A stretch of DNA of 64,000 nt from IMGVR_UViG_3300017991_000001:124001-188000; one strand, 5' to 3'. Shown: positions 4,438 through 37,040, numbered from the stretch's first letter. The notes: generated by a model not told the origin, from the letters alone. Numbers and translations are program-made.

Positions 4438-5199
4438 GTGGACGCGTTTGACGCCCGCATAAGACAACGTGCCCTTGAGAAGCGCGCAGCCATTCCCTCC
4501 AGACTGTATGAGATGGCCTCGTCCGGCGATCTGCCGAAGTCGCGTGTCGGTCTGGCGCTCGAAGAGGTGGCGTTGGATCGTACGCAAAAGGCCGTCGACG
4601 AGGGCGTCATCTCGCCCAACCAGGCACGTTCCTTTTACCGGATGCAAATGCTTTCGCTGGGGCGCCATCAGCCCGAACTTGAACAGGCCACCGAGGTACC
4701 CACCATGCGCCTGGGTGAGCAGGCCCCGGTGACGCCCGGTGAATTGGCATGGGCCGGCGGCATGTCCGTGGGTGTTCCCTGGCTGGGGTCTCGAATGCCC
4801 GGCGTGAGCAGCCTGTTCGGCGGCCCCATTAGCACAGGCGAAGCGGCGAAGTGGACAGTTTCTCCAAAGTTCATCGGTTTCTCGGTGCTGGGAGATGTAC
4901 TAGGTTCCGGTCTGGGAGCCTTCTCACAGCCCGGTTACCAGAAAGGCGAACAGGGATACATGTCGGCGGTGGGTTCGGCATTCAAGGAGCATATGCGCGG
5001 TGTCGGCCAGGCCAGTCGCGAGGCTCGTGATCGGTACGGCTTGTTCGGTGTGCCGCTCCAGGCGCTGCACGGTATCTGGAATCCGCTCGCCAGTACGGGC
5101 TACATGCTGAAGAACGTCAAGGACACCGTCTTCGACAAGGCGGGCAGCGCGGCGCTGCGCGCGCAGCACGCCGTGGAGAAAGCACTCAAGGAGGCCTAG
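4438..5199 (+). CDS. Putative virion protein with Gly-rich hydrophobic segments
   Basis: GTG start after GAGGA; LEKRAA motif near the N-terminus; GxxxG-rich core. Confidence 0.55.
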   Translation: MDAFDARIRQRALEKRAAIPSRLYEMASSGDLPKSRVGLALEEVALDRTQKAVDEGVISPNQARSFYRMQMLSLGRHQPELEQATEVPTMRLGEQAPVTPGELAWAGGMSVGVPWLGSRMPGVSSLFGGPISTGEAAKWTVSPKFIGFSVLGDVLGSGLGAFSQPGYQKGEQGYMSAVGSAFKEHMRGVGQASREARDRYGLFGVPLQALHGIWNPLASTGYMLKNVKDTVFDKAGSAALRAQHAVEKALKEA

Positions 5200-5200
5200 G

Positions 5201-5812
5201 ATGCCGTTCAAAAGCGAGGCACAACGACGCAAGTTCTACGCCATGGCCGACCGGGGTGAGATCTCCGACGAGACCGTGGACGAATGGGAGTCGAAAACGA
5301 AGGACAAGGACCTTCCCGAACGGGTTGAAAAGAAGGACGAGAAGAAAGAGAAGAAGGCGGCCCTGGCCCGTATACTGAAGGTGGCCAACGTCATGCTCGA
5401 CACCCGGCACCAGGCGCGTAAGGAGCGCCTGCTGCCCGTCCTCATGCAGAAGACGGCCATCATGCGCACCGCGCTGAAAGCAGTCGGCCGGGCGGCGGCG
5501 AAGAAGAAGCCGATGGCGTTCGGGGAGAGTGCGGAGCAGTTGGGCCTGTCCGTTGGCGACATCCTGGGTATGCGCGGCAAGGGCGGCTACCTGACGCGCC
5601 GCGGAGCCAAGGCCGGTTTGCGTGAAGCCGGCGAGAAGGCCAAGGGCAAGAAACTGAAGAAGCTGTTGATGGAGGAACTGGCGCGACGCCGGCGCATGGT
5701 CGGCTACGGCGCGCTGGGCACCGGCGGCACGGGCGTCGGCTTGCTGGGCTACATGCTGGGCAGTTCCGGCGCGCCCTCGCAGCCTTACCCCGATTACTAT
5801 CCATCTATGTGA
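5201..5812 (+). CDS. Putative head-associated protein with MPFKSEAQRR N-terminal module and C-terminal hydrophobic helix
   Basis: MPFKSEAQRRKFYAMADRGEIS...LPERV; KKAA and QKTA motifs; GYGALGTGGTGVGLLGYMLG. Confidence 0.65.
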   Translation: MPFKSEAQRRKFYAMADRGEISDETVDEWESKTKDKDLPERVEKKDEKKEKKAALARILKVANVMLDTRHQARKERLLPVLMQKTAIMRTALKAVGRAAAKKKPMAFGESAEQLGLSVGDILGMRGKGGYLTRRGAKAGLREAGEKAKGKKLKKLLMEELARRRRMVGYGALGTGGTGVGLLGYMLGSSGAPSQPYPDYYPSM

Positions 5813-5819
5813 GGTAATC

Positions 5820-6218
5820 ATGGGCGACGAGACCAGGGAGAGGATCAACGCCTTCAAGGTCGGCTTTCTGAGAAAGCTGGCCGAGGAGGGCATCACGCCT
5901 GACGAGTTCCACGAGCACGTCAAGCAGGCCTTCGACCCCATGGCGGCGGCGGTCGCCGGGGCCGGGGGCGCTGCGGACGTCGGAACGAAGCTGGTGGGAG
6001 CGGGGGCCGACGTGGGCGGCGCGCTGCTGAAGAACCTGGCGTATGCCGGGGTGTTGGCGCCCATGGCGCTGGGCGGCACGGCCGGCGCGATCGAGGCCCG
6101 CTTGACCAGCCCGTCCGTGGAGGACGTGGAGGCCATGCGCCGCGCCGAACTGGCGGCCAAGTACGAGCAGATGGCCCGCGTGATCAGGCAAAGGCTTAGA
6201 GCCAAGAGAGGCGCTTGA
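5820..6218 (+). CDS. Small Gly/Ala-rich putative virion protein
   Basis: RBS GAGGT; VKQA motif followed by a Gly-zipper-like segment. Confidence 0.6.
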   Translation: MGDETRERINAFKVGFLRKLAEEGITPDEFHEHVKQAFDPMAAAVAGAGGAADVGTKLVGAGADVGGALLKNLAYAGVLAPMALGGTAGAIEARLTSPSVEDVEAMRRAELAAKYEQMARVIRQRLRAKRGA

Positions 6219-6220
6219 GC

Positions 6221-6676
6221 ATGTCTGGCAACAATGGAAACGGGAGCAAGGCGCCCGAGGTCGAACCGGTAGGAGAGGTTTCGGACATCAGCGCCGAGGA
6301 GTCGCAACAGGCCGAGCGGCAAAAGCAGGAAGATCTGGACCCGCAGTTGGTGGACCCGTACGGCATGCACGGCAAGGAGTCCATCCTGCCGGGCTTCGAC
6401 GGCCTGCCTTTCCGGGGCCGCGTGCCGAACCTGAAGGAGACGGACCGGGTTCAGCCACAGGTCGCAGCGCAGGTCCACGTGCACGTGCTGGACCTGTCGA
6501 AGAGCGAGGACATGAAGCTGTACCGGAAGATCTGCCAGGTGGTCGGCAACGGTATGGGACAGATCTCCTTCGAGAAGCACGAGTACGACGAGGACATCAA
6601 GAACTGGCGCGTGTTCATCCGTTGGATGCTTAACTACGCGCACATGCCGTCCGAGTCCGGCAGCCTGTTCATGTGA
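6221..6676 (+). CDS. Hypothetical phage protein
   Basis: Typical codon usage; ATG 6221 preferred over TTG 6215. Confidence 0.6.
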   Translation: MSGNNGNGSKAPEVEPVGEVSDISAEESQQAERQKQEDLDPQLVDPYGMHGKESILPGFDGLPFRGRVPNLKETDRVQPQVAAQVHVHVLDLSKSEDMKLYRKICQVVGNGMGQISFEKHEYDEDIKNWRVFIRWMLNYAHMPSESGSLFM

Positions 6677-6684
6677 GGTGAGCT

Positions 6685-7557
6685 ATGGGTGAATTCGCGA
6701 AACGGGCCGCCGAGGTCCTGGAGCCGTGGGAGCTGGAGCTGGAGCGCCAGCAGAAGAAGCTCTACAAGAAGATCCCGTCCTCCAAGGAAGAGGCCACCAC
6801 TTCGGCGATCAACCGCATCAACGAGCTGCGCCAGAAGAGCTACATGGCCGGCTACCTGATGAGGCATCTGCGTAGCGAGGAAGAGGAAACCAAGCGCCTG
6901 CTGCCGGAGGACTCGGTGGGCGTGCCCGGCAGGGAGATCTCCCTGGCGCTCCCTGAGAAGAAGGCTGGTGCGCTGGACGCGTTGACGCGCCCGCTGCGCG
7001 AGACGGCCGAAGACCTCAAGATGCACGCCTCCCAACGCATCGACGAGGAGAAGGAACGGCTCACACGCACCACGTCCGATCCCGGCACGCTGCCCTGGTA
7101 CTACCCCATGATGGCGCTGACCGCCCCCAACGCCTTCGCCGAGGGGTTCCGCAAGGCGGAGAAGGACATCGACGCCGAGGAGCTGGCCCGCATCAACGAG
7201 CGGCTCGTCAAAGCCAAGGCCGAGTTCGAGAAGGCGCTCGAGGAGGAGTACAGCCAGTCGGGCAGCTTGAAGGTCAGCAGCGCCCGGCCTCAAAGCGCCG
7301 GCGAGATGATCGACGGGCTGGCGCAGATGCATGTCAAGTGCGCCGAGGGTGAGCTCAACCAGATCCTGGGCACCTACCTGGCGCTGGCCGCGCTGCTGGG
7401 TCAGGGCGCGCACATGACGGCCAAGGAATGGGCCGAGAAGCGCGACCCGAAGAGACAGAAGCTGAAACTCGTGCGCGAGGCCGTGCGCCAGCGCATGCGT
7501 TCGTACATGCCACCCATCCGGGTGGAGGCCGGGGAACCTGGACTGGCCATAAGCTGA
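6685..7557 (+). CDS. Helical putative virion protein
   Basis: RBS GAGGTG; AKRAA, EKKA, VKCA motifs; coiled-coil character. Confidence 0.6.
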   Translation: MGEFAKRAAEVLEPWELELERQQKKLYKKIPSSKEEATTSAINRINELRQKSYMAGYLMRHLRSEEEETKRLLPEDSVGVPGREISLALPEKKAGALDALTRPLRETAEDLKMHASQRIDEEKERLTRTTSDPGTLPWYYPMMALTAPNAFAEGFRKAEKDIDAEELARINERLVKAKAEFEKALEEEYSQSGSLKVSSARPQSAGEMIDGLAQMHVKCAEGELNQILGTYLALAALLGQGAHMTAKEWAEKRDPKRQKLKLVREAVRQRMRSYMPPIRVEAGEPGLAIS

Positions 7558-7571
7558 CACGGGGTCCTCAC

Positions 7572-10500
7572 ATGCCTGAAGCCCTTCTCAATGACACGCT
7601 GAGCGCGCCGGTCAAACCAAAACCGGCCGTCACGCATCGCACGTTCGACGACGTGGACACCATGCGCGGCTCCATCTTCGACGGGGTGCTCGACGCCGTG
7701 GCCAAGAAGTACCCGGTCGAGAACACCCGCTATCGCATGGAAGTGGCTGATCTGGGCTACGGCAAGGACAAGCCTTACTCCCTGGAAGACCAGAAAAAAG
7801 CGATCATGACGGGCCAGACGATGACCCGTCAGCTGTCCGGCACCTGGCGCCTGGTCGATAAGGAGTCGGGCAAGGTCGTCGATTCAAAGAAGGCCGTGAT
7901 CGCACACGTGCCCTATGTCACGCCTCGGGGCACCTTCATCTACCGCGGCAACGAGTACACCATCTCCAACCAGATGCGCCTCAAGCCCGGGGTCTACTCC
8001 CGCGTCAAGGACAACGGCATGATCGAGGCCCACTTCAACGTGGCGCCCGGCACCGGCCCGTCCTTCCGCATGTACATGGAGCCGGACACCGGCATCTTCC
8101 GCCTGGCCGTGGGCCAGTCGACGCTGAAGATGTACCCGATCCTGAAGGCCATGGGCGTGCCCGACCGCGAGATCGAGCAGATCTGGGGAAAGGAGCTCCT
8201 GCAGAAGAACACCGAGGCGGCCGACCCGCGCGCCGTCTCCCGCGCCTTCGCCAAGCTGGTGGCGACCCGCGCGGACCAGCCGGGCATCGACGCCGACCGG
8301 GAAGGGCTGGCCAAAGTCGCCCAGTTCACCCAGGTGGACAACGACCTGGTCGTGGGGCCTTCGCGGGTCCACGGCAACGGCTTGTACACGCAGCAGCCCG
8401 TCCCGGCCGGCACGCGCGTCACGCCGGCCTACATCCGCATCGGCATGACCGGCGACACCGAGGCCGACTTCGTGCGTTCCGGGCCGGCGCTGTGGGTCAA
8501 TCACCAGCCCGACGACATGGCCAACACGGTCACGGCCGTAGCACCCGACGGGCGCATGGCCAACCTGATCGCCACCCGCGACATCGAGCCGTGGGAGGAG
8601 ATCACCTGCGACTACGCCAAGAACCACGACACGCTGACGGACTGGGTCAAGCAGCTGTACGACATGGACGAGATGGAGGCCGAGAGGTCGATCTCCAAGA
8701 TCGCCATGTCGAAGACGGCGGCCAAGATCCCGACCGTGGCCGTGGACCTGGACGGCACGCTGGCCGAGATGTACGAGTCCTTCGATCCCAAGAAGATCCC
8801 CGACCCCCGCCCCGGCGCGCGCAAGGCCATGAAGAAGTTCCAGGACAAGGGCTACCGGGTCCTGATCCACACCGTGCGGGGCGACGACCAGCTGACCAAG
8901 GACTGGTTGCACAAGCACGACATCCCCTACGACTACGTCAACGAGAACCCGGACCAGCCCGACACTGCATCCGACAAGCTGATCGCCGACGCCTACGTGG
9001 ACGACCGCGGCGTGCAGGGTGCGCAGGCCTGGCACAAGATCGAGCAACAGGTCTCCGCCAAGCTGGAGAAGGAAGCCAAGATCGGTTTCAAGGACCAGGA
9101 GATGCGGTGGACGAAGTTGTGGTTCCACGGCACCGTGCGGGCCCAGCGCCAGGGCAACGACGGCAAACCGTGGGTCTATGTCCAGGTCCACAAGGGGCTT
9201 ATGGACGCTGCTCGGGACAGCCTCGCCAATGAAGGCGTGGACATCGAGAAGAACCCCAACGACCCGCACATCACGCTTCTGCGCTCCAGCGAAGCCCAGG
9301 AGCTGATCGACCGGCACGGCGAGGAGCAGTGGAAGGGCGCGGCCAAGGACGGCAAGTCCATACGCTTCGCGCTCAGGCGCATGATGTCCCTGATCCCGGA
9401 CGGGTGGGACGGCGTGGACCGGGTCTGGTTCATCGAGGTGGAGAGCCCGGACTTGAAGAAGTACCGGCGCGATCTGGGTTTTCCCGAGCTGCCCATCGGC
9501 GACAACGGCAACGAGCACCGCTTCCACATCACCTTTGCCATCCACCGCTCCAAGAACGAGCCCAAGCGCGCGGCGTACCTGCTTTCCGGTGCCGGCATCG
9601 GAATCGTGGAGCGCGCCTTTGAGAAGGCCGCCGGGGCCACCGACCAGGGCATCGAGCTCAACCAGGTCTTCGACCGCATGGAGCTGGACCCTGACGTGAC
9701 CAAGTCCACGGTCGGTGAGGGCTTCAAGAACGCCGGCATCCCGACGCTGCTCAGGGTCAGCCAGAAGCTCCTGAACATTTCAAAGGGGATGGAGGACACC
9801 GACGACCGGGACTCGCTGGCCTACCAGAAGCTGTACGGTCCCGAGGACTTCTTCACCGAGCGCGTGAACCGCGACGCCGGCCAGACCGGCCGGAAGCTGT
9901 TGTGGCGCGCCACGCTGCGGGGCAACCTGAAACACGTGCCTACGGGGGCGCTTTCCGGGCAAATGTTCGGCGTGCTGCTGAGAAGCGGCATGGGGATGAG
10001 TCTCGAAGAGACCAACCCCATGGACATCATGGACCAGAACCTCCGCGTGATCCGCCTGGGCGAGGGCGGCATTCCGTCGCTGGACTCGGTGCCGGAGGAG
10101 AGCCGAAACGTCCAGCCCAGCCACTTCGCCTACCTGGACCCGATCAGAAGCCCGGAGAGCGAGAAGATCGGCGTGGACTCGCGCGTGTCCCATCGCGTGA
10201 TGAAGGGTTCCGACGGGCAGTTCCACGCGCCCATGTTCAACCCGAAGACAGGCAAGGAGGAGATGGTCTCCGCGGCAAAGGCGGCCGAGTCGGTGGTGGC
10301 CTTTCCGGGCGAGCTGAACAAGAAGCGCGGCAAGGTCAGGGCCATGGTCAAGTCCAGGCAGGTCCAGTACGTGGACCGCAAGGACGTGGACTACGAGGTC
10401 GAAGACCCCAACCAGATGTTCACGCTCAGCTCCAACCTGGTTCCCCTGGTGTCGGGCATCAAGGGCGGGCGCCTGCTGATGGGCGCCAAGTACTTCACCC

Positions 10501-13500
10501 AGGCGCTGCCCCTGCGCGAGCGGGAGGCCCCGCTGGTCCGCAACCTGGAGAGGAGCGGCAAGTCCTTTGACGAGCTGTACGGGGACCGGGTGGGTGCCAT
10601 ACGCGCGCAGGCTCCGGGTGTGGTGACCTCGATGAACAAGAACGGCATCAAGGTCAAGTACGCCGACGGGACCACCAAGGAGCATGAGCTGTATCGCAAC
10701 TTCCCCTTCAACCGGAAGAGCCTGACCGGGGATTGCGAGGTGCTGATCAAGCGTAACGGCGAACTCCTTGTTACGCGACTGGACGCCTACGAATTCGAGC
10801 AGGGGGACCTGACGCTGTCGATCGACCCTGAAACGAAGTTGTCCGCATGGATGGAGGTAACTGGCTATACGCGTCACGAGTGTGACAAGCGCCTGTACCG
10901 GGTCAAAACGGATTCAGGCAGAGCCTTCACAATAACTGAGGATCACAGCTTGATGGTGATGGGCCCTGAAGGCGATCTCGTCCCCGCTTACCCAAGCGCT
11001 TGCGTCGTTGGGCACACGCGCATACCCGTGGCGCTGCCTCGTTTTGAAGGGTGTCGCGGATTTTTCGGCGAGGACAAGCTGGGAACGTTGACCGGCCTGT
11101 ACCTGGCGGAAGGACATATTCCTCAGAACCAGCCCAATCTCATCATCATAGCGGTTGCGCCGGAAGAGCGGGCAGACGAGGTAATGCGGCTGTTTCGCGA
11201 ACTTGGCTGCAAACCTTTCAGGAACGGCGGTTCCGTGTGCGCTACCGATGCTGATTTGAGCAAGTTTCTCATAAAGAACTGCGGACACCTTTCGCACGGC
11301 AAGTTTATCGGCCGACAGCTGATGAATGCCAACATGTCGTTCAAACAGGCTCTGTTACAAGGCTATTTGGCCGGCGACGGCAACTTGTGGGCGGACAGAA
11401 ACGGCACTGTTCAGCTCACGGCAGTGACCGTATCCAAACGTCTTCGCGACGATCTGGTCGTTCTCGCGGGCACTTTGGGAGTCTTCACGACGCTTTTCGA
11501 CGTACCCCGTGACAACGAGGCATGGCGTGACGGCTACGGGCTGCGCTTCCCGAACAAGGAATTGAAGCGGACGCGGTGGATGTTCTACGAGGACCGTCAA
11601 CGCCTGCTCGACGCGTTGGTTAGGGAGAACACGCGCGCGTCCAAGTTTGACGTGGTTCCGGTGCCACGGGAAGCGCGTAAAGCCTTGTATGGCGAGTTGG
11701 AAACTGTGCCGCATTTCGTCTACAAAACGGTTAACAAGGGCTACGTGGCGAAACACAGAGTGCGTACGGGGTCTGGTGTTTTTGGAAAGTGGGGCGCCTC
11801 CGACGTGTCCTGGGACCGGATCAAGTCGATTACGGAGGTGCCCAGCGAGGAATATGTTTATGACCTGTCCGTGGCGGCATCCGAGGCTTTTGCGGTAAAC
11901 GGCGGCGTCGTTGTCCACAACACGTTCATCCACAACACCCCGACCGTTAAGATCGGGGACCGGGTCCGCAAGGGGCAGTTGCTGGCCACCAGCAACTACA
12001 CGGACGACCAGGGCGCGCTGGCGCTGGGCACCAACCTGCGCACCGCCTACGTGCCCTACAAGGGCCTCAACTTCGAGGACGCCATTGTCATCTCCGAGTC
12101 GGCGGCCAAGCGGCTCTCCAGCGAGCACATGTACCAGCACACGCTCGACAAGGAGGACGACACGGTCACGGGGCGCAAGCAGTTCGTCTCGATCTACCCG
12201 ACGACCTTCAACCGCAAGCAGCTAGGCGCGCTGGACGAGCGCGGCGTGGCCAAGGTGGGCACCACCATCAAGTACGGCGACCCCGTGGTGCTGTCCATGC
12301 GCAAGAACCAACCCTCGGCCGTGCATCGGGGCCGCAAGCCCATGTACACCGACACCTCCATCACCTGGGATCACGAGTCCCCGGGCATGGTGACCGGCGT
12401 GGACGAGACGGACGACGGCGGCTTCAACGTGACGGTGAAGGCCTACATGCCGGCACAGGAGGGGGACAAGCTGGCCGGCCGCTACGGCGACAAGGGCGTG
12501 ATCTCCAAGGTCGTGCCCGACGACCAGATGATGCACGACCGGGACGGCAAGCCCTACGAGATCCTGCTCAACCCGTTGGGCATCATCACGCGCGGCAACC
12601 CCTCCCAGGTGTACGAGACGCTGCTGGGCAAGGTGGCCCGCAAGCGGGGCAAGCCCATTAGTGTGCCGGGCTTCATGGACGAGAGCATGGTGGACTACGT
12701 GCGGAAGGAGCTCAGCCGGGAGCGGATGAAGTCGCATGAGGACCTCTACGACCCGACCACCAACCGCAAGGTGCCGGACATCCTGACCGGGGACCGCTTC
12801 ATCTTCAAGCTGCACCACACCGCCGAGTCCAAGGGCAAGGGCCGCGACGTGGGCGCCTACACCTCCGAGGGCATCCCGGCCAAGGGCGGCGAGTTGGGCT
12901 CAAAGCGGGTCAGCAACATGGAGCAGAACGCCCTGCTGTCCCATGGCGCGACCGGCGTGCTGCGCGACGCCCAGGTGGTCAGGGGCCAGCGCAACGACGA
13001 CTTCTGGCGGGCCTTCAGGATGGGCTACACGCCCCCCTCGCCGAGCGTGCCCATGGTCTACGACAAGTTCCTCAACCACCTGCGCGGCGCCGGCATCAAC
13101 GTCAAGAAGAACGGCGACCGGACGCAGCTGCTGGCCATGACCGACAAGGACGTGGACGAGATGACCAGCGGGGAGATCACCGAGGCCAAGACGGTGGACT
13201 CCGACACGCTCAAGGAGATCGACGGTGGGCTGTTCGATCGCGGGCTCACCGGAGGGCACGGGGGCAGCCGCTGGAGCCATATAAAACTGGCCGAACCCAT
13301 GCCCAATCCCGTGATGGAAGAGCCCATTCGTCGCATGTTGGGCCTGACCAAGGTCAAGTTCGAGGAGGTCCTGCAGGGCAAGGAGGACATCGGCGGCGAG
13401 ACGGGCACCAAGGCCATCGGGGCGGCGCTGAAGCGCATCAACCTGGACGAGGCCATCGACAACGCCAAGCTGATCATCAAGGACGGCGCGAAGTCCAAGC

Positions 13501-14559: not shown

Positions 14560-15186
14560 ATGTCCGCGTCCAAAGGTGTTGCCAAGAAGGTGCTGCCCAA
14601 GCCGAAAGGCAAGGAGGGGAAGATTCTCGTGACCACGCCCAAGCCCGACAAGGTTTCCGTACAGGCGGTCAAGACGTCCGCGCTGCGCCGAGCAGAGATC
14701 CTCAGCCTGATCACCAAGGAAGGTTTCGGCTTTGCCACGAAGGAGGGTAGCGCTGCCAAGGGGCTCGTGAACGCTGCCGGCAAGCTGCGCTCCGGGGCTC
14801 GAAAGGGCCTCAAGTCTTACGGCAAACTGGTCGGTAGCAAGACGAAGCCCGGAATTGCTACAGACAAGGAACGGAAGTTGTTCAACAAGGCCAAGAAGAA
14901 GGGCGTCAAGAGCAAGAAAGGCGCCAAGGCTCTCGATAAGTTCAAGCGCGAGGCTTCCAAGAAGACCGTGAAGCACTTGAACCGTTCGCAGAAATTCTTC
15001 GGAAAGCTGAAGGACGACAAAGGCAATCGCATTAAACTCAGCTCCGCTCAGCTGTTGGGCCACTTCCTGAAAAGGGCGCTGACCAAGCAGGGTTCGGAGC
15101 AGATCATCAAGCAGGCTTCGGACCGCGAACGGGCGGCCCGTGTGCTTTCAGCCGTCCACAAGGCGGCACGCAGCTATGGACGCTAA
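14560..15186 (+). CDS. Very Lys-rich basic protein, possibly DNA-binding/internal head protein
   Basis: RBS GGGAG; dense Lys content; IIKQA motif. Confidence 0.65.
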   Translation: MSASKGVAKKVLPKPKGKEGKILVTTPKPDKVSVQAVKTSALRRAEILSLITKEGFGFATKEGSAAKGLVNAAGKLRSGARKGLKSYGKLVGSKTKPGIATDKERKLFNKAKKKGVKSKKGAKALDKFKREASKKTVKHLNRSQKFFGKLKDDKGNRIKLSSAQLLGHFLKRALTKQGSEQIIKQASDRERAARVLSAVHKAARSYGR

Positions 15187-15388
15187 GGCGTACCTCATCA
15201 AGCAGGCGCTGGGGATGAGTGGCCTCCAGATGCAGATGGAGATGCCCTTTTCACCACCCCGGCCCGTGGCGCACATGGACACGCTGGAGGACCGCCGTAC
15301 CCGGGAAAAGATGCTGGCGGACCTGCCGCCATCCAGACGTGAGGGGATCTTAAGGGCCATACAGGCCAGAATGAGGGCCAGACGATGA
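15176..15388 (+). CDS. Small protein with AYLIKQA leader
   Basis: Begins MDAKAYLIKQALG; overlaps both neighbours. Confidence 0.6.
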   Translation: MDAKAYLIKQALGMSGLQMQMEMPFSPPRPVAHMDTLEDRRTREKMLADLPPSRREGILRAIQARMRARR

Positions 15389-18252: not shown

Positions 18253-18261
18253 GGGTTGTGA

Positions 18262-20100: not shown

Positions 20101-20110
20101 GGAGCAAGCG

Positions 20111-28122: not shown

Positions 28123-29394
28123 ATGAGCAATCAGAGTCTCATGGCCATGATGGACACGCTCCTCAAGCAGGCCAATGACGTGGAAAAGGAAGCGCTTTCC
28201 GACGTCTCGGGCCCCGAACCGACGACCCATCCGGTCATGTCGGCCGACGATGGCACGCAGGCTGCCACCGAGGGGGCGAGAAGTTCCGAGAACGAAAGCG
28301 ACGCTCGCGAGGAACACGGCGACCTGGCCGTCACCGGACAGGAGGACGCCGAGAGTGCCGAGGCCGGTGAGAAGGACGAAGCCGACAGTATCGGCACCGA
28401 GACATCAGATTCGGACGAGATGCGAGGGAACGTGGAGCAGCCCAAGGCCACGAAGGACGCCCCGCCGGACAGCGGCCCGGGCGACCACACCTTCTCCGAG
28501 AAGTACTCCGCCGCGGCCATCGTGGATTCGGGCAACAAGCTGCTCGCCGCGCTGGGCAACCTCACCGGACAGCACAAGCAGGCCGATGAGAAGAAGGAAG
28601 GCGAGGAGAAGAAGGACAAGAAGAAGGATGAGAAGGGCGAAGCGTGTGACGACGGAGAGAACTGCGACAAGAGCGCTTCCGAACAGGAAAAGCGCGCCGC
28701 GGCCGAGAAGTATCAGGAGGACGCGGAAGCAGGGTACGTCGCCGCCCAAATGATCGCCGAGCAGCTGATGAGCAAGCAGGCTGAGGAGGAAGAGCTCGTC
28801 AAGCTGGCGGAGAACATCATCAAGACCGCGCACGCTGACGCGGATCTCCTCTGCGAATTCCTGGACAGCCACGAGAAGGGTGTCAAGGGCCTGGAGGCCG
28901 TCAAGAAGGCGTCTCTCAAGAAGAAGGCGCAGCCTCCCATGGGCGCGCTGCCTGCCATGGGTGGCGGCGGTGAGCTTGGCCCCGAAGCCGGCGGCATGAT
29001 CCCCCCGGAAGCACTGGCGGCGGGCGCTCCCCCCGAGGAGCTTCCTCCCGAAGCGGGCATGGAAGGCGCGCCCGGTGACGAAGAGGCGGCGATCGACGCC
29101 CTGGCCGATGCACTGGCCGAAGCGGGCGTGACCCCGGAAGAGCTGGCTGAAACCATCGCCGAGGCGGGTGGTGAAGGCGAAGTCGCACCCGAAGGCCTCG
29201 AAGAGGGCATGGAGGAAGAGGCCCCCGCAGAGGTGCCCGGAGAGGTCGTTGAAGACGCAGCCGAAGGGGCTGCCGAGGGTGCTGCTGAAGGCGCCACCGA
29301 GGGAACCGAAGAGGCGGAGGAGGAGGCGCCCAAGGCTGCCTCTATGAGCAAGCAGAGCATCAAGGAGGCTTTGCTGAACATCGCACGGGGCTAA
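28123..29394 (+). CDS. Capsid scaffolding protein
   Basis: Very acidic, low complexity, between protease and capsid genes; about ten K-x-A motifs. Confidence 0.7.
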   Translation: MSNQSLMAMMDTLLKQANDVEKEALSDVSGPEPTTHPVMSADDGTQAATEGARSSENESDAREEHGDLAVTGQEDAESAEAGEKDEADSIGTETSDSDEMRGNVEQPKATKDAPPDSGPGDHTFSEKYSAAAIVDSGNKLLAALGNLTGQHKQADEKKEGEEKKDKKKDEKGEACDDGENCDKSASEQEKRAAAEKYQEDAEAGYVAAQMIAEQLMSKQAEEEELVKLAENIIKTAHADADLLCEFLDSHEKGVKGLEAVKKASLKKKAQPPMGALPAMGGGGELGPEAGGMIPPEALAAGAPPEELPPEAGMEGAPGDEEAAIDALADALAEAGVTPEELAETIAEAGGEGEVAPEGLEEGMEEEAPAEVPGEVVEDAAEGAAEGAAEGATEGTEEAEEEAPKAASMSKQSIKEALLNIARG

Positions 29395-30440: not shown

Positions 30441-30821
30441 ATGGACAAAAAGTGTGCAGCGTACCTGATCAAGGAGGCGACCCGGCCATACGCCCGGGGT
30501 AGCTCCGGGGGTCGAGTCATCCCCGTGCCAGGTATGCAGGAGGCCGTCGCTGCAGCCACCCGGCAGGGTATCGGCAGGAAGACGCCCCCTGCGGGCGGCG
30601 GAGGAGGAGGTGGCGGCTTTCTGGCCCCCTTCCGCCGGATGGGTTGGCGGCGGGGCTTGCGAGCGGCCGGCATCGGAGGCGGTATCGGTGCCCTCCTTTG
30701 GGGCTTGGGCCATCTGTGGGCGAACAAGAATCGCCCCAGCGTGTCCGAGAACGTCACGCAAAACCTCAACGCGAGGATGCGTGGAGCTGGAGAAGAAGGC
30801 ATTTACATGAAACCTCAGTAA
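30441..30821 (+). CDS. Inserted small protein with AYLIKEA leader and TM-like helix
   Basis: MDKKCAAYLIKEAT; AAGIGGGIGALLWGLGHLW. Confidence 0.65.
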   Translation: MDKKCAAYLIKEATRPYARGSSGGRVIPVPGMQEAVAAATRQGIGRKTPPAGGGGGGGGFLAPFRRMGWRRGLRAAGIGGGIGALLWGLGHLWANKNRPSVSENVTQNLNARMRGAGEEGIYMKPQ

Positions 30822-30887: not shown

Positions 30888-31835
30888 GTGGCTAACCCAA
30901 CTGCGAGCGAGCCGACCTCTCGGATGGTCAACGATGCATTCATCGATCAGTTGGCCAGCGGGAACGACCGGATCGTGAAGGAAGCCCAGGACGCGATCAA
31001 CGATTACGTCCGGGTAAGGATGCGTGAAGATGGCTTCTGGCGGAGAATCCTCCCGCCGGTGACCATCACCAACGACGAGCTGGATCGGCAGGTGGACACC
31101 GACAAGCCCGTCAAGGTGGTCGACAAGGAACCTGAGAGCCCTGCGGCGATCAGCGTGCCTTTTGCCTCGCTGCCCATGAACCGGTACATCCGCGGGCCCC
31201 GGTTCCGCGTGATGTTCGACCGCATCCTGACGCCCAAGTTCACGAAGGACGTGGACGAGCTCAGGACCTACGACATGGACATCCGGCAGATCCTGTCGGA
31301 CAACTCCATCAAGGACATGCTGGCCGAAGAAGACGGCAAGGCGATTGCCACCGTCAACTTCCTGCTCCTCGGCGTCAACACGCCCCTGGCCGAGACGGGC
31401 GTCGCGCAGTGGGTTGCCATCTCCGGTGGCGTCACCCGCGACAACCTGGCTGAAGCCATGAAGGTGCTCCCCCGCACCCCGAACCACCTGAACGTGGCCA
31501 CGGTGTTGGTCAACAACGTCACCATCTGGGACGTTGTCAAGTTCGGGCGCGACGAGGTCGGTGGTGACCTGTCCCAGGACCTGTTCGAGAACGGGTTCGC
31601 GGAGCGGGAGCTGCTCGGCCGGCGCTGGATCGTCACGATCAAGCGGGACCTGGTGCCTGACAGCACCATCTTCCTGTTTGCCGCGCCGAAGTTCCTCGGC
31701 AAGTTCTTCGTGCTCGAGGACACGACGATGTACATTGATCGCCGTGCCTTCATGCTCGAGTTCTTCGCGTACGAGAGCATTGGCTCCTCGATCGCGAACG
31801 TGGCCGGCATCGGGCGTGTCGACTTCGAGCCCTAA
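30888..31835 (+). CDS. Major capsid protein (HK97-like)
   Basis: RBS TAAGGAG plus GTG; ~315 aa; REDGFWRRILPP, TPKFTKDVDELRTYDMDI, DMLAEED; follows protease and scaffold. Confidence 0.8.
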   Translation: MANPTASEPTSRMVNDAFIDQLASGNDRIVKEAQDAINDYVRVRMREDGFWRRILPPVTITNDELDRQVDTDKPVKVVDKEPESPAAISVPFASLPMNRYIRGPRFRVMFDRILTPKFTKDVDELRTYDMDIRQILSDNSIKDMLAEEDGKAIATVNFLLLGVNTPLAETGVAQWVAISGGVTRDNLAEAMKVLPRTPNHLNVATVLVNNVTIWDVVKFGRDEVGGDLSQDLFENGFAERELLGRRWIVTIKRDLVPDSTIFLFAAPKFLGKFFVLEDTTMYIDRRAFMLEFFAYESIGSSIANVAGIGRVDFEP

Positions 31836-31934: not shown

Positions 31935-32267
31935 ATGAGTCAGGAAATGACCCAGGAGGACGCGGCGCTGTTCGAGAACGTGTACGCGCCCGCCTTCGCC
32001 CAGAAGATGGCCTCCAACGGCCGCCCGCTCCACGACGACGAGTCGATGGAGCACGCGCTGGAGCTGACGGCGCGGGTGAAGCAGGAGGTGCAGTCTTCCG
32101 ACGCCAACTCGATCAAGGAAGCCAACCTGGCTTTCCGCAAGGCGACCGGCGCGGACGAGCGCGATGCCGAAGAGGCTCGCGAGACCAGCACCAAGGAGGC
32201 TGCCCGCAAGCTGGCGGCCGACCCCGGCTTCAGGCAGATGCTGGAAGCGGCGCGCAGCGCCCAGTAG
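31935..32267 (+). CDS. Small acidic helical head-module protein
   Basis: RBS GAGGAG; IKEA, TKEAA. Confidence 0.65.
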   Translation: MSQEMTQEDAALFENVYAPAFAQKMASNGRPLHDDESMEHALELTARVKQEVQSSDANSIKEANLAFRKATGADERDAEEARETSTKEAARKLAADPGFRQMLEAARSAQ

Positions 32268-32767: not shown

Positions 32768-32781
32768 GGAGTGAGGAGAAC

Positions 32782-33069: not shown

Positions 33070-33106
33070 GCCGCCCGGCTATGTGTACATGGCCGGGCGG
33101 CTTTTT
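33070..33106 (+). terminator. Intrinsic terminator
   Basis: GCCGCCCGGCTATG-tgta-CATGGCCGGGCGGC followed by TTTTT. Confidence 0.75.
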
Positions 33107-33127
33107 CATTAGGAGAGGGACGCACAG

Positions 33128-34051: not shown

Positions 34052-34053
34052 TC

Positions 34054-34656: not shown

Positions 34657-34657
34657 G

Positions 34658-35794
34658 ATGAATCACCGGGCTTACTTGTTTAAGGAAGCAGCCAAGTGGT
34701 CTCGCCGCTTGATGGGTATGCTACGTTCTGCGACCCCCAAGAGGCGTAAACGCTTACTTAATCAATTCTACGAAGGTCATCTTCCTGAAAAGGGAATGGT
34801 GAGTCGGTATGGCTTAGAGGACGATCTAAGGGAGATGCAAACGTATAGTAGAGCACTGGAAAGGGCCGAGGATGCTTCAGAAGCGATGTCAGGATTGAAA
34901 CAGCGTATGATAGAAAGAAAGATCCCTGTTCCGAAAACTGCCCCCACTCCAAAGGGCTTTCGTGACTATGGGTATGGTATGTCAGGTGCACGCACCATCG
35001 CTTCCGACCTGACAGAAGTGTTCCCTAAAGCAAAGAGATCAAAGATAAAAGGCATTGTGAAAAGAAGTCCGGCCGCTTTGTACAAATACCTGGCAAGTCA
35101 AGTTAGCGCTTATCCAATGAGTCCTGAAAGACGGTGGGGTGCCAATAGTCTACTGGAAAAGTGGCTTGTGTCGGGCAAAGGGAAAGCATTCAAACCACGT
35201 CCACCGCATAAGTATATGAAGACGCATAAGACAAAAGGGGGCAAAGTTGTCACGGAGGAATATAAGAAAAAGCAACCCGAGTATCAGCCCGAAGCACACG
35301 TCTGGAGAGGCTATGGTTCGGACCGTCCTCTGCTTGCTCGTACAAGCGATGTTTTTGTTTCACCACACCCGCAAGTGGCAACAAGTTTTGGTGACCTCGT
35401 GGCCCGCATCCCTTTATCCCGATACGGCAACGTAAAGTATAGCCCGGACGTGGGGCTGAAATTTGAAGGTGCTGTTTCCTCTGGGTATAAGTGGCGTAAG
35501 AAGCGCCTTGCAAAGATCAAAAAAAGAATGTTGAAGGGGAAAGGATACAAGAAGTTCATCTACCCCGGAATGAACGCTCCCCTTCGAGATTATGAAACCG
35601 TTTTACCGACAGTGGGACCAAAGGACATCGGGGAGCTGTACAGCAGCCATGACTACAAACTGCACCCGCTTCGTTTGAAACTGCCGAAAAGGATGCAGAC
35701 TGCAGGCAAGCGGACAGTACCGGCTACTGGCGAGAATCTGCTTTCACATCCCGTTACGAAGTCATTGTCTGAATTTGTAACACCAATCATGTAG
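34658..35794 (+). CDS. Low-GC basic protein with AYLFKEA leader; possible ADP-ribosyltransferase-like C-terminal domain
   Basis: MNHRAYLFKEAA; markedly lower GC; HVWRG...VFVSPHPQVATSFG. Confidence 0.65.
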   Translation: MNHRAYLFKEAAKWSRRLMGMLRSATPKRRKRLLNQFYEGHLPEKGMVSRYGLEDDLREMQTYSRALERAEDASEAMSGLKQRMIERKIPVPKTAPTPKGFRDYGYGMSGARTIASDLTEVFPKAKRSKIKGIVKRSPAALYKYLASQVSAYPMSPERRWGANSLLEKWLVSGKGKAFKPRPPHKYMKTHKTKGGKVVTEEYKKKQPEYQPEAHVWRGYGSDRPLLARTSDVFVSPHPQVATSFGDLVARIPLSRYGNVKYSPDVGLKFEGAVSSGYKWRKKRLAKIKKRMLKGKGYKKFIYPGMNAPLRDYETVLPTVGPKDIGELYSSHDYKLHPLRLKLPKRMQTAGKRTVPATGENLLSHPVTKSLSEFVTPIM

Positions 35795-35803
35795 AGGAAA
35801 AAC

Positions 35804-36781
35804 ATGACAGACGTGCCGGTCCTACAGGGTTACGACATCTCGGCCATCGACTGCGATGTGTTCGAGCGTATCCAGATCCAGACCAACCCTCTGGGCGGCA
35901 ACGTCATTGCGTGGGGCCTGCAGCAGGGCTTCAATCAACCCGGTCCCTATCACTTCTACGTGGACTTCGGCCGCTCCGGCACCAACGAGTGGGAGGTCCT
36001 CAACCAGACCCCCGTCGTGGACGACTGCTTCTTCGTGGACCCCTGCCAGCGCCACTGGGACACGCTGGTCGACTACTTCTACAGGGTTCGCCTGGTGCTG
36101 CCCAGCGTCAAGGACGACGCCGGCAACTGTGTAGCCTACGTCTCCCAGCCCCAGCAGGCCAACGGGCTGTGGAACAAGAAGGACTGGCTGAAGGCGCGCT
36201 ACATCATCCGCCAGGAACTGAAGTTGCAGGACAAGGCCACCACCCAGACGTCGAAGGGTGTGCTGCTCAAGCGCCGGCGCTACGGCGAGCAGTCGGTGAC
36301 GACCACCACCTGGGACGTCGGCGAGATCCAGCACACCGGTTCCACGGTGGATTACGGGACCGGCATCGTGGGCGGGTACTTCCGGGCCATCGATTACCGG
36401 ATCACCTTTGACACGCCCTGGCGGCGCGAGTTCGGGCGCGACAACCCCACCAAGGGCACCACGCACGAGATCAAGCGCTCCGGGCGGGCCATCGCCTACC
36501 CCTACGTTGAACACGACGATGTGTTCCATCGGCTGGACAGCGGAGAGCGCTTTGTCATCAAGGCGGTGGAGACCGTCGCCGAGATCGGCAACATCCCGAT
36601 CATCGTGAAGCTCGAGTTGAGCCTTGCCCCAACGACCGCTGAGATTTATAAGATACCCCTTTCAGGGGGTTCCTCGTCCGCCGCGCCTGAGTCGTCGGAC
36701 AGTTCGGAGTCAAGCCCAAGCGGCGTCGAACCCGAGAGCTGCGGCCCCACGGCCCGCATCGATGACGCCGGAGAGTGGTAA
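35804..36781 (+). CDS. Neck/head-closure-like structural protein
   Basis: RBS AGAGGA; N-terminal FN3/Ig-like segment ending YFYRVRL; position before the tail terminator. Confidence 0.5.
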   Translation: MTDVPVLQGYDISAIDCDVFERIQIQTNPLGGNVIAWGLQQGFNQPGPYHFYVDFGRSGTNEWEVLNQTPVVDDCFFVDPCQRHWDTLVDYFYRVRLVLPSVKDDAGNCVAYVSQPQQANGLWNKKDWLKARYIIRQELKLQDKATTQTSKGVLLKRRRYGEQSVTTTTWDVGEIQHTGSTVDYGTGIVGGYFRAIDYRITFDTPWRREFGRDNPTKGTTHEIKRSGRAIAYPYVEHDDVFHRLDSGERFVIKAVETVAEIGNIPIIVKLELSLAPTTAEIYKIPLSGGSSSAAPESSDSSESSPSGVEPESCGPTARIDDAGEW

Positions 36782-36794
36782 AAGGAGACACACA

Positions 36795-37040
36795 ATGGCC
36801 GGTAAGGAAGAGCAAGTCAAAGAGGCGGAAGCCAACATCCAGGAGCGCCTGCAGGCGTTCGACTACGGGATGGAACTCTTCTTCAAGGAAGCGGGCATCG
36901 AGAAAGCCGCGGTTGCGCAGGCCGTCGGTCTCGAAGAGCAGGACCTTGCCCCGAAGTCGGCACGATGGCTGAAGGAACAGATGGAGGCGGCGAACAAGGA
37001 AGCAGAGAGCAAAGACGCCGCCCCGACAAAGGAGGAGTAG
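36795..37040 (+). CDS. Small acidic protein with K-x-A motifs
   Basis: RBS AAGGAG before ATG 36795; VKEA, FKEA, EKAA. Confidence 0.6.
   Translation: MAGKEEQVKEAEANIQERLQAFDYGMELFFKEAGIEKAAVAQAVGLEEQDLAPKSARWLKEQMEAANKEAESKDAAPTKEE

Follow-up and report, generated by a model that had tools for sequence, protein, structure and literature searches.

The T4 prohead protease gp21 cleaves head proteins at an L/I-x-E motif, and the internal proteins IPI-III and Alt of T4 carry a capsid-targeting sequence, a short N-terminal leader that ends in this motif and is cleaved. The proteases of giant phages, including phiKZ gp175, 201phi2-1 and SPN3US gp245, recognize S/A/G-x-E, cut many head proteins carrying multiple motif copies, and also cut themselves (PMC5694885, PMC10052503). 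All characterized members of this giant-phage group cut after Glu. Herpesvirus assemblin, a maturational protease with release and maturation sites, belongs to the same fold superfamily as gp21 and HK97 gp4 and cuts between Ala and Ser in the consensus (V/L/I)-x-A-S. In an uncultured 211-kb phage and hundreds of relatives, we found that the head-building proteins are marked with a short Lys-x-Ala (K-x-A) signal, which most likely tells the phage's own head protease where to cut, unlike the cut-after-glutamate rule of T4 and phiKZ. The window analyzed here is a 64,000-nucleotide stretch of this phage (IMGVR_UViG_3300017991_000001:124001-188000).

Over-representation of K-x-A in the head region

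The initial annotation reported recurrent K-x-A tetrapeptides in the scaffold, the capsid, the protease and several other head-region ORFs, and we confirmed this observation. The scaffold ORF contains LKQA15, EKEA22, HKQA152, DKSA183, EKRA190, SKQA218, VKLA227, IKTA234, VKKAS261 and PKAA404, together with TKDA111, KKKA267 and IKEA414, which had not been listed. The capsid contains IVKEA, and the protease contains TKRA34, RKVA238, SKSA449 and the sequence FSMAC with Ser169. Comparison of each ORF with composition-matched shuffles had been put forward in advance as a way to test the observation, and the enrichment survived this correction. In ORFs 4438-37040, 125 K-x-A were seen against 76.0 expected (1.65x, z 5.6), which is rank 1 of 400 residue-x-residue pairs, while KA (78 vs 76), KxxA (79 vs 76) and KxxxA (67 vs 76) were flat. 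When the ORFs were shuffled one by one, enrichment was strong in five of them and weaker in three others (Table 1). Several ORFs that had been flagged were not individually enriched: ORFs 4438-7557, 14560-15186, 16375-20100 and 25465-26616 were at or below expectation, 23226-24062 had no site, and 34054 had a single site. The impression that the motif is sparser in sheath, tube and baseplate proteins is true in raw counts, but it is largely a low-lysine effect, since the tail-block ORFs after 37116 have 26 sites against 31 expected, which is neutral rather than depleted. K-x-A also concentrates at N-termini, as 19 of 28 head ORFs have one in the first 40 residues against 7.6 expected, a value reached by 0/3000 shuffles.

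We then applied the same blind scan to phages with experimentally known motifs (PMC5694885). SxE was rank 1 in phiKZ head proteins and not in phiKZ non-head proteins, and in T4 gp67/68/21/22/23/24 IxE was rank 1 and LxE rank 3. K-x-A ranked only 38 in phiKZ and 20 in T4, although it was mildly above expectation in both (z 1.4-1.6). In the window head ORFs, the Glu-type pairs LxE, IxE, SxE, AxE and GxE ran at 0.95-1.22x (z <=1.2) and the herpes-type pairs VxA, LxA and IxA at 0.84-0.95x, and none was enriched. Among 75 loci around protease homologs of 31-53% identity and GC 32-68%, K-x-A was rank 1 in about 60, and it was rank 2 in the cultured phages Arash and D69, indicating that the signal is at the protein level and not at the DNA level. 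Pooled over 70 related loci, K-x-A was 5023 vs 2700 (1.86x), whereas KA was 0.98, KxxA 1.13, KxxxA 0.97, AxK 0.96, RxA 0.95, KxS 0.89 and KxG 0.81; replacement of Lys by Glu or Gln likewise gave no enrichment. Here, we need to consider that related loci share ancestry, and the pooled z-scores therefore overstate independence. The ortholog groups fall into two classes, marked (2.2-3.3x) and unmarked (0.6-1.1x).

Table 1. Positions in the window of the ORFs discussed, with K-x-A counts (seen vs expected from per-ORF shuffles) and sites.
Feature	Position	Strand	Length (aa)	K-x-A count	Sites and properties
Small ORFs upstream of the RNA polymerase gene	4438..7557	+		none individually enriched	three with K-x-A near the N-terminus (4438: LEKRA15-17; 5820: LRKLA19-21; 6685: FAKRA6-8)
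Giant RNA polymerase protein	7428..14504	+		20 vs 12.8, p=0.027	beta plus N-terminal part of beta', intein and accessory domains
Leader ORF 1	15176..15388	+	70		starts MDAKAYLIKQA; net charge +6
ORF	20111..20602	+	163	4 vs 1.25, p=0.03 (counted over 20006-20602)	first at residues 9-11 (MSSVEELTKEA)
Unknown function	20633..23224	+	863	13 vs 4.8, p<0.0005 (0/2000 shuffles)	conserved cluster at aa 617-688
Unknown function	24064..25452	+	462	12 vs 3.3, p<0.0005 (0/2000 shuffles; counted over 23992/24064-25452)	K35-V-A37 (nt 24166-24174), K325-D-A327 (nt 25036-25044)
Head maturation protease (predicted)	26613..28073	+	486	10 vs 4.1, p=0.003	protease domain about aa 40-230, then a helical C-terminal domain; His117 (nt 26961-26963), Ser169 in FSMAC (nt 27117-27119); candidate self-cleavage sites K34-R-A36 (nt 26712-26720), K238-V-A240 (nt 27324-27332), K443-L-A445 (nt 27939-27947)
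Probable scaffolding protein	28123..29394	+	423	13 vs 5.6, p<0.0005 (0/2000 shuffles)	sites spread along it; conserved K22-E-A24 (nt 28186-28194), K404-A-A406 (nt 29332-29340); net charge -66
Leader ORF 2	30441..30821	+	126		starts MDKKCAAYLIKEA; +13, Gly-rich
Major capsid protein (predicted HK97 fold)	30888..31835	+		1	K31-E-A33 (nt 30978-30986), predicted to end a 33-residue propeptide; probable GTG start at 30888, preceded by AAGGAG
ORF	31935..32267	+	110	4 vs 1.2, p=0.013	
Leader ORF 3	34658..35794	+	378		starts MNHRAYLFKEA; +44
ORF	36795..37040	+	81	6 vs 1.6, p=0.0005 (counted over 36624/36795-37040)	first at residues 9-11 (MAGKEEQVKEA)
Leader ORF 4	40691..41392	+	233		starts MDYRGYLIKQA; +35; tail block
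Leader ORF 5	53739..54548	+	269		starts MNAKAYLIKQA; +21, HELGH motif; baseplate block
Leader ORF 6	54538..55170	+	210		starts (M)DAKAYLIKQA; +20, TTG start
Leader ORF 7	55173..55937	+	254		starts MNPRAYLLKRA; +8, HELGH motif; paralog of ORF 5
Leader ORF 8	57570..57938	+	122		starts MNHRAFLLKEA; +9, 30% Gly

The predicted protease, its marked neighbors and a shared leader

The protease ORF was examined by structure prediction and by alignment of its homologs. The AF2 model has pLDDT 82.5, and the three chains of T4 gp21 (5jbl) are the only convincing PDB hits in Foldseek (prob 0.98-0.99, E 9e-3 to 2e-2, TM 0.54 on the target), while all other hits have prob <=0.13. The E-value is modest, and the link to gp21 rests on fold only, since the ORF has no Pfam hit, its only PHROG match is the unannotated phrog_2774, a PDB profile search gave only chance hits, and hhalign against T4 gp21 gave prob 0.2; it was thus not placed in a curated family such as Pfam S77/S78. 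In a 44-sequence alignment reaching down to 36% identity, His117, Ser169, K238 and A240 are invariant. The spacing of His117 and Ser169 (52) is close to that of gp21 and HK97, but their superposition on the gp21 catalytic residues was not checked and activity was not assayed, so that a catalytic role for this pair is neither established nor excluded by our data. The K34 site is kept in 63/65 orthologs, K238 in 65/65 and K443 in 49/65, and the ortholog group is 3.26x enriched. K238-V-A240 lies in the disordered linker after the protease domain, which is the lowest-confidence linker of the model (228-245). The gene order is protease, acidic scaffold-like ORF, three small ORFs and then the capsid gene; self-processing is only inferred from the invariant motif sites in linkers.

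The scaffold-position ORF is acidic and poorly modeled (pLDDT 0.43), and it has no family match, so that its designation as a scaffold is an inference. Its K22 site is kept in 33/34 orthologs and K404 in 27/34, and the ortholog group is 2.17x enriched. The capsid protein matches phrog_2522 (major head protein), its AF2 model has pTM 0.77, and Foldseek gives 321 PDB hits at E<=0.001, led by HK97 Prohead II at 1.7e-9. Its start codon was read from the sequence. The single K-x-A, at the predicted propeptide border, is kept in 68/69 orthologs, 24-39 residues from the N-terminus, and in 13/13 representatives below 60% identity, while its neighbors vary; however, the site lies in a predicted helix inside a generally conserved stretch, and removal of the propeptide in virions was not measured, the conserved single K-x-A being the only evidence for it. 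K-x-A is rare in the mature part (24 vs 72 pooled), although this depletion fades from 0.33x to 0.62x (11 vs 17.7, P=0.06) when thinned to 13 lineages. In ORF 20633-23224, the sites at 617, 652, 675 and 688 are kept in 26-35 of 49 orthologs and the group is 2.44x enriched, and its Arash homolog gp218 was found in virions by MS. In ORF 24064-25452, K35 is kept in 44/45 orthologs and K325 in 37/45, and the group is 2.77x enriched. The domains of the giant RNA polymerase protein come from Pfam and PHROG hits, and its Arash homolog gp206 is the most-detected virion protein; its K-x-A sites at module borders (aa 548, 713 and 1953) are not conserved in Arash or D69. For the small ORFs at 4438-7557, only self matches turned up in IMG/VR.

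Eight otherwise unrelated ORFs share an 11-residue N-terminal leader, M-[D/N]-x-[K/R]-[A/G]-[Y/F]-L-[I/L/F]-K-x-A. BLAST finds similarity among them only in residues 1-13, apart from one paralog pair. Codons differ at synonymous positions, and each ORF has a ribosome-binding site. All eight proteins are net basic, like T4 internal proteins, and this is the only indirect support for their delivery into the prohead, as neither targeting nor removal of the leader was assayed. Similar leaders occur in relatives. A homolog of Leader ORF 5 designated P0123 (30% identity) keeps an AYLMKVA leader and carries PF04298, whereas the homolog P0122 (54% identity) has YLIKQS, that is K-Q-S instead of K-Q-A.

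A proposed processing code read by the head protease

Based on these observations, we suggest with good but not complete confidence that K-x-A is the core of the recognition site of the prohead protease encoded by ORF 26613-28073, a His/Ser protease with the predicted T4 gp21 / HK97 / herpesvirus assemblin fold. The fuller site is about [L/F/M]-[E/V/I]-K-[Q/E/T]-A followed by [A/S/E]. In this view, within the assembled prohead the protease would remove a roughly 33-residue propeptide from the capsid protein at its single K-x-A, and would chop the acidic scaffold and the two large, heavily marked proteins (20633 and 24064) into fragments. It would free itself from its C-terminal domain at K238-V-A240 and trim its C-terminal tail near K443, a layout that resembles the release and maturation sites of assemblin. 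It would also clip the leader from at least eight basic proteins, the leader acting like the T4 capsid-targeting sequence and carrying them into the head. What our analysis demonstrates directly is the motif statistics, the conservation of the motif, the predicted folds, the invariant His/Ser pair and the shared leader, whereas it is by inference that cutting happens at all, that the bond cut is after Ala (Lys at P3, Ala at P1), and that leader-bearing proteins end up inside the head. No proteomic or biochemical observation of any cleavage exists for this clade; the Arash paper does not analyze processing, and its coverage column is unusable. The cut after Ala is favored by sequence preferences that extend from P5 to P2' with A/S at P1', by leader identity that stops exactly at the Ala, and by the cleavage of assemblin, which has the same fold.

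The interpretation given in the initial annotation was therefore supported in part. Its core idea, that K-x-A is a processing code read by a head protease encoded in the window with a specificity different from the Glu-specific T4 and phiKZ enzymes, is strongly supported by indirect evidence, but its register of P3 Lys and P1 Ala is inferred only. Its claim that the motif predicts the internal proteome from sequence alone goes beyond the evidence, since about 60% of head-region occurrences (76 of 125) are expected by chance, only about nine ORFs are individually enriched, and usable prediction needs the extended motif, an N-terminal position or conservation. In addition, the head/tail split is not clean, because five of the leader proteins, which carry the clearest signal, are encoded inside the tail/baseplate block, beyond the head region that had been delimited.

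An alternative that we consider unlikely is that the protease reads the same motif but cuts after the lysine (Lys at P1, Ala at P2'), in the register [L/F/M]-x-K|x-A, mirroring the [L/I]-x-E| of T4 with a hydrophobic P3 and a charge-swapped P1. The strongest upstream preference (L/F/M, two residues before K) falls exactly where T4 has Leu/Ile relative to its P1 Glu, the HK97 protease cuts after a lysine, and Pro is disfavored after K as much as after A. However, specificity would then sit mostly on the prime side (x, A, A/S, D/A/E), which is unusual for serine proteases, and all eight leaders would leave the same Q/E/R-Ala dipeptide on unrelated mature proteins, whereas sequence identity stops right after Ala. 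Moreover, Arg never substitutes for Lys, unlike most basic-P1 proteases, and the preference for Ala followed by Ser matches assemblin.

It is still less likely that K-x-A is an uncleaved docking or modification motif, either a contact for scaffold-capsid or cargo-shell binding or a target for lysine modification, for example by the SET-like module in the RNA polymerase protein. Such a segment is present, though below the Pfam cut-off (21.9 vs 22.4 bits), many sites lie in predicted helices, and the strict Lys would fit a lysine-directed enzyme. On the contrary, the heaviest marking is on the protease itself and the scaffold, which are the proteins removed from heads in every studied system, the invariant site lies in a disordered inter-domain linker, the capsid has one site at the propeptide position and few elsewhere, the motif closes a leader on unrelated proteins as the cleaved T4 targeting sequence does, and the scan picks out true cleavage motifs in T4 and phiKZ. 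A by-product of composition or secondary structure seems very improbable and is already largely refuted. The marked proteins are Ala- and Lys-rich and largely helical or disordered, L-x-K-x-A also fits an amphipathic-helix pattern, and K-x-A is slightly above expectation in T4 and phiKZ, but expectations were computed per protein and checked by shuffling, only the one-residue spacing and these two residues are enriched, and individual sites are invariant across relatives of 31-53% identity while their neighbors vary.

Comparison with known head proteases

True sequence homologs of the protease domain (27-43% identity over the N-terminal domain) are found in Salmonella phage Arash (gp222), Vibrio phages D69/D148/D181, Bacillus phage G (gp19), cluster-C mycobacteriophages (Myrna gp97) and Gordonia phage Stormageddon (gp13, annotated as capsid maturation protease). 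They are encoded in the head-gene block upstream of the major head protein, with the same layout in Arash, D69, Myrna, Stormageddon and phage G, and in Myrna and Stormageddon the domain heads the protein directly upstream of the capsid gene. Arash and D69 share the K-x-A enrichment and the capsid K-E-A site, and the Arash scaffold-position protein gp223 has eight [L/M]-x-K-x-A sites. None of these homologs has a described cleavage specificity, and the Arash paper does not mention a protease. In the actinophages the domain is fused to a protein of more than 1000 aa, and the signal is weaker or shifted, RxA being top in Stormageddon and K-x-A rank 9 in Myrna.

Assemblin shares Ala at the inferred P1 and Ser/Ala at P1', while P3 here is Lys rather than Val/Leu/Ile; there is no sequence similarity, and the assemblin Ser-His-His triad was not examined in this study. 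With phiKZ, 201phi2-1 and SPN3US, the phage shares a large myovirus-type genome, many head proteins with multiple motif copies and a multisubunit-type RNA polymerase, which is packaged in the virion in the relative Arash. It differs from them in that Glu-type pairs are flat, the genome shares no near DNA match with any deposited phage, and RNA polymerase beta and part of beta' are fused in one intein-containing ORF. With T4, it shares the predicted protease fold, a protease gene next to the scaffold gene and upstream of the capsid gene, a three-residue motif with two specified positions, marking of the capsid propeptide, scaffold and protease, and a roughly 10-residue N-terminal leader ending in the motif on unrelated basic proteins. 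Compared with T4, the specified residues are Lys and Ala rather than Leu/Ile and Glu, no sequence similarity to gp21 is detectable, the protease is 486 aa, with a large helical C-terminal domain and an invariant Cys cluster, and the predicted capsid propeptide is about 33 residues against 65 in T4.

Lys-x-Ala statistics in the window and its relatives

The window belongs to a 211-kb uncultured viral contig (IMGVR_UViG_3300017991_000001), it has a GC content of 63-65%, and every convincing gene is on the + strand. It has no near DNA match among 50,697 deposited phages, and searches against Pfam and PHROG were blank for most ORFs. The recognizable genes encode RNA polymerase parts, a weak major-head-protein match, a baseplate wedge and a sigma-like protein. 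The giant polymerase ORF fuses RNA polymerase beta to the N-terminal part of beta' and is interrupted by an intein with a LAGLIDADG domain (aa 1124-1498), while a SET-like segment (just under the Pfam cut-off), a HAD/polynucleotide-kinase-phosphatase-like module and a 2H-phosphoesterase module lie ahead of the polymerase part. The C-terminal part of beta' is a separate gene. The homologs in Salmonella phage Arash were the most-detected (gp206) and fifth most-detected (gp216) virion proteins by mass spectrometry, and a protein annotated as a sigma factor in Arash (gp10) was also detected in virions. The nearest cultured relatives are Arash and Vibrio phages D69, D148 and D181, which share about 40% identity over the protease domain and the same gene order.

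The initial annotation had noticed Lys-x-Ala tetrapeptides across the head-region proteins, and this observation held, since every tetrapeptide listed there is present. A loss of the excess after correction for Lys and Ala content had been named beforehand as an outcome that would count against the motif. We computed expectations protein by protein from each protein's own Lys and Ala content. ORFs 4438-37040 hold 125 K-x-A against 76.0 expected (z 5.6), which is the top pair of all 400 residue-x-residue pairs and of the 1600 pairs tested at spacings 0-3. In contrast, KA (78 vs 76), KxxA (79 vs 76) and KxxxA (67 vs 76) were flat, which excludes a simple co-occurrence of Lys and Ala in the same segments. 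ORFs after 37116 have 26 K-x-A against 31 expected, indicating that the sparseness in sheath, tube and baseplate proteins suspected in the initial annotation is mostly a low-lysine effect. With regard to those labels, PHROG and Pfam recognized only the baseplate wedge and the sigma-like protein in this part of the window, and sheath and tube were not confirmed.

When each ORF was shuffled 2000 times, as had likewise been proposed in advance, five ORFs were singled out, and signals were weaker in three others. Several ORFs flagged by the initial annotation were not individually enriched. For ORFs 4438-7557, the search of IMG/VR returned only the window's own contigs and gave no comparative support. 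Sites are concentrated at N-termini: 19 of 28 head-region ORFs have a K-x-A in their first 40 residues against 7.6 expected, a number reached by none of 3000 shuffles. In the giant polymerase ORF, K-x-A at module borders (aa 548, 713 and 1953) is not conserved in the only full-length orthologs in hand, Arash and D69, and processing of this protein at its module borders remains speculation.

Features of the window, with K-x-A counts (observed vs expected from shuffles) and conservation among orthologs
Position	Feature	K-x-A in the ORF	Ortholog-group enrichment	Conserved sites (orthologs keeping the site)
4438-7557	ORFs flagged by the initial annotation	not individually enriched
7428-14504	RNA polymerase beta fused to the N-terminal part of beta', 2358 aa	weaker signal
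14560-15186	Region flagged by the initial annotation	not individually enriched
15176-15388	Leader ORF, 70 aa, previously unlisted
16375-20100	Region flagged by the initial annotation	not individually enriched
18262-20100	C-terminal part of beta'
20111-20602	ORF	weaker signal
20633-23224	Most heavily marked large protein	13 vs 4.8	2.44x
23226-24062	ORF flagged by the initial annotation	not individually enriched
24064-25452	ORF	12 vs 3.3	2.77x	K35 (44/45), K325 (37/45)
25465-26616	ORF flagged by the initial annotation	not individually enriched
26613-28073	Predicted head protease	10 vs 4.1	3.26x	K34 (63/65), K238 (65/65), K443 (49/65)
27141-27197	Asp/Cys cluster of the protease, aa 177-195
	Probable scaffold	13 vs 5.6	2.17x	K22 (33/34), K404 (27/34)
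30441-30821	Leader ORF
30870/30888-31835	Capsid protein, weak major-head-protein match			K31-E-A33 (68/69)
31935-32267	ORF	weaker signal
34658-35794	Leader ORF
36795-37040	ORF	6 vs 1.6
40691-41392	Leader ORF
50034-50768	Sigma-factor-like protein (phrog_351, E 1.6e-11), inside the tail/baseplate block
52082-53731	Baseplate wedge
53739-54548	Leader ORF with H-E-L-G-H motif
54538-55170	Leader ORF
55173-55937	Leader ORF with H-E-L-G-H motif
57570-57938	Leader ORF

In order to examine whether the method finds real protease motifs, we ran the same blind scan on two phages whose cleavage motifs are known from experiment. In phiKZ head proteins the top pair was SxE (53 vs 33.9), which was not enriched in phiKZ non-head proteins. 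In T4 gp67, gp68, gp21, gp22, gp23 and gp24 the top pair was IxE (23 vs 10.4), and LxE was third (23 vs 12.0). These are the published motifs, S/A/G-x-E and L/I-x-E (PMC5694885). K-x-A ranked 38 in the phiKZ set and 20 in the T4 set, while the Glu-type pairs and the herpes-type V/L/I-x-A pairs were flat in the window.

The protease has at least 800 database relatives and at least 575 loci in IMG/VR. We scanned 10 kb on each side of about 75 of these loci, which span 31-53% protease identity and GC 32-68%; whole contigs were not scanned, and no tree-aware model of motif gain and loss was applied. K-x-A was the top pair in about 60 of them and in the top three in nearly all others, and it was second in Arash and in D69. 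Pooled, it was 5023 vs 2700 (1.86x), whereas KA was 0.98, KxxA 1.13, KxxxA 0.97, AxK 0.96, RxA 0.95, KxS 0.89 and KxG 0.81. KxxS was 1.32, which fits Ser after the Ala. Thus the motif needs Lys and not Arg, and Ala and not Ser or Gly. Explanations at the DNA level were rejected, because the excess holds from 32% to 68% GC and leader codons vary at synonymous positions, which puts the constraint on protein. The flanking preferences give a longer site, with L/F/M two residues before K, E/V/I just before K, Q/E/T between K and A, and A/S/E after A followed by D/A/E, while Gly and Pro are disfavored throughout. The scaffold-position protein of Arash, gp223, shows this plainly, with eight [L/M]-x-K-x-A sites, most of them followed by Ser or Ala.

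Conserved sites and the predicted head protease

Ortholog alignments revealed that the capsid protein has exactly one K-x-A. It is kept in 68 of 69 orthologs and in 13 of 13 representatives below 60% identity, while its neighbors vary (IVKEAQ, FNKTAE, HIKNAA, LEKGAS and others). In Arash, the capsid protein gp226 has L-V-K27-E-A29, followed by Gly30, and the protease homolog gp222 has L-E-K218-V-A220. With the likely GTG start at 30888, which is preceded by AAGGAG, the site would end a 33-residue propeptide. The protein models as an HK97 fold. The mature part of the capsid protein has few K-x-A when orthologs are pooled (24 vs 72, 0.33x), but this weakens to 11 vs 17.7 (0.62x, P=0.06) after thinning to 13 lineages, and avoidance of the motif is suggestive only. 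Ortholog groups fall into two classes, the marked one being formed by the protease, ORF 24064, ORF 20633 and the probable scaffold, and the unmarked one (0.6-1.1x) by beta', 23226, 29896, 33128, 35804 and 37116. When functions for 20633-23224, 24064-25452 and the probable scaffold were sought in the ESM Atlas, all scores were below the reliable range. The product of 20633-23224 gave only weak ADP-ribosyltransferase-like leads (score 0.69); if real, it would parallel T4 Alt, a packaged and cleaved ADP-ribosyltransferase.

The predicted protease, ORF 26613-28073, has no Pfam match, but His117, and Ser169 in the FSMAC motif, are invariant across 44 homologs. Its AF2 model (pLDDT 82.5) has an N-terminal beta-rich domain and a helical C-terminal domain, and a low-confidence linker at residues 228-245 joins them and holds the invariant K238-V-A240. 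The only convincing PDB matches were the three chains of T4 gp21 (prob 0.98-0.99, E about 1e-2). A PDB profile search and hhalign against T4 gp21 were negative, so the relationship rests on fold, and the model was not superposed on the gp21 structure 5jbl to compare His117 and Ser169 with the gp21 catalytic pair, nor were the S1 and S3 pockets compared. Invariant Asp177, Cys179, Cys182 and Cys193 (D-x-C-x-x-C ... C-x-H) lie just after the predicted catalytic Ser169 and look like a metal-binding insertion in the protease domain; we are not aware of such an insertion in gp21 or HK97 gp4.

Homologous domains head the long proteins just upstream of the capsid gene in Myrna (gp97) and Gordonia phage Stormageddon (gp13, annotated as capsid maturation protease), and gp19 of Bacillus phage G is called a head maturation protease in PMC12484599. 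Among these more distant homologs, the phage G head module has K-x-A as its top pair (25 vs 14.7, z 2.7), and gp19 itself has 8 vs 2.4. The top pair of Stormageddon is R-x-A (45 vs 26), and the Myrna and Stormageddon capsid proteins share a K-L-A about 46 residues from the N-terminus. A basic-x-Ala specificity may therefore be older than the Arash-like clade.

A shared N-terminal leader

Eight ORFs, which had not been seen as a group in the initial annotation, begin with M-[D/N]-x-[K/R]-[A/G]-[Y/F]-L-[I/L/F]-K-x-A. The pattern never occurs on the minus strand and only once internally; leader-bearing ORFs were not catalogued across whole genomes. Beyond residue 13 the proteins are unrelated, except for one paralog pair, and all are net basic (+6 to +44). 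Codons differ at synonymous positions, and each start has a ribosome-binding site. Closer relatives have similar leaders, such as MNHLGYLIKTA and MAINKYLLKQA. A 30%-identity homolog of 53739 keeps AYLMKVA, although a 54%-identity homolog reads YLIKQS. Five of the eight genes lie in the tail/baseplate block, and the code therefore does not follow the head/tail gene boundary.

The 70-aa ORF has the full leader (MDAKAYLIKQA) and sits in what looks like an intergenic gap, overlapping the end of the preceding ORF and the start of the next one. The products of 30441-30821 and 57570-57938 are glycine-rich (21% and 30% Gly; one has a run of eight Gly) with hydrophobic Gly/Ala stretches. The two paralogs, 53739-54548 and 55173-55937 (44% identity), carry the H-E-L-G-H motif, and a 30%-identity homolog has Pfam PF04298 (Zn_peptidase_2); they may be packaged zinc peptidases encoded among baseplate genes.

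Proposed specificity and comparison with known systems

Based on these observations, we conclude with fairly high confidence that K-x-A is the core recognition site of this head protease. In this view, the protease would trim the capsid propeptide, degrade the scaffold and itself, process ORFs 20633 and 24064, and clip the leader from cargo proteins. The motif statistics, their conservation and the shared leader were read directly from the sequences, but no cleavage was observed here, and the cutting itself and its position are inferred. The proposal of the initial annotation, that this protease differs from the Glu-specific T4 and phiKZ enzymes and has Lys at P3 and Ala at P1, was supported in part. 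We also looked for experimental support in the Arash paper (PMC10585845), which lists 116 virion proteins without recognizing a protease or any processing, and whose supplements hold only gene sequences. The 'coverage' column of its Table 2 cannot be true sequence coverage (for example 92% from 2 unique peptides) and may be an identification probability, so it should not be used to infer processed regions, and an apparent match between the 13% uncovered residues of the capsid protein and the predicted propeptide was rejected.

Cutting after Ala is favored, since the sequence preferences run from P5 to P2', identity among the leaders stops exactly at the Ala, and assemblin, which has the same fold, cuts Ala|Ser. 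Cutting after Lys nevertheless remains possible. A docking or lysine-modification motif that is not cleaved is less likely, and a purely compositional artefact is essentially excluded.

A wider reading is compatible with the data, although we regard it as tentative. A very large, almost entirely uncultured clade of roughly 150-230-kb phages, with at least 575 IMG/VR loci and at least 800 protein clusters, and with Arash and a few Vibrio phages as its only named members, might use a head-assembly code not described for any phage. In this reading, a gp21-fold protease has switched from Glu-P1 to Ala-P1 with an obligatory Lys at P3, giving a specificity close to that of herpesvirus assemblin, and a transferable 11-residue address tag ending in that site sends arbitrary cargo into the capsid, including basic DNA-binding-type proteins and Zn-peptidase-like enzymes encoded among tail genes. 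If true, the packaged and ejected proteome of hundreds of dark-matter phages could be read from sequence, and the tag could also be used to load foreign proteins into capsids.

Head proteases, their short cleavage motifs and capsid-targeting leaders are the handles by which T4 and phiKZ-type phages were shown to package and eject dozens of proteins. In a clade where almost every gene is unannotated, a sequence-readable code would name the protease and sort the head-region genes into those predicted to be cut (protease, scaffold, capsid propeptide and leader-tagged cargo) and those predicted to stay intact, and the prediction is directly testable in Arash, an existing laboratory phage. It would also extend known gp21-fold specificities beyond cutting after Glu, towards the Ala|Ser rule of assemblin, which bears on how specificity evolved in this ancient protease lineage.

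A literature search for a Lys/Ala-type motif of any phage prohead protease found no description of one. The combination of head protease, motif and targeting leader is already known, whereas the specificity, the leader sequence and the clade are new. The layout of the predicted protease, consisting of a protease domain, a linker site, a helical domain, a second site near the C-terminus and then a conserved tail, parallels the release and maturation sites of herpesvirus assemblin (PMC4498786). The leader shows the pattern of the capsid-targeting sequence of T4, a roughly 10-residue leader ending in the gp21 motif on basic internal proteins.
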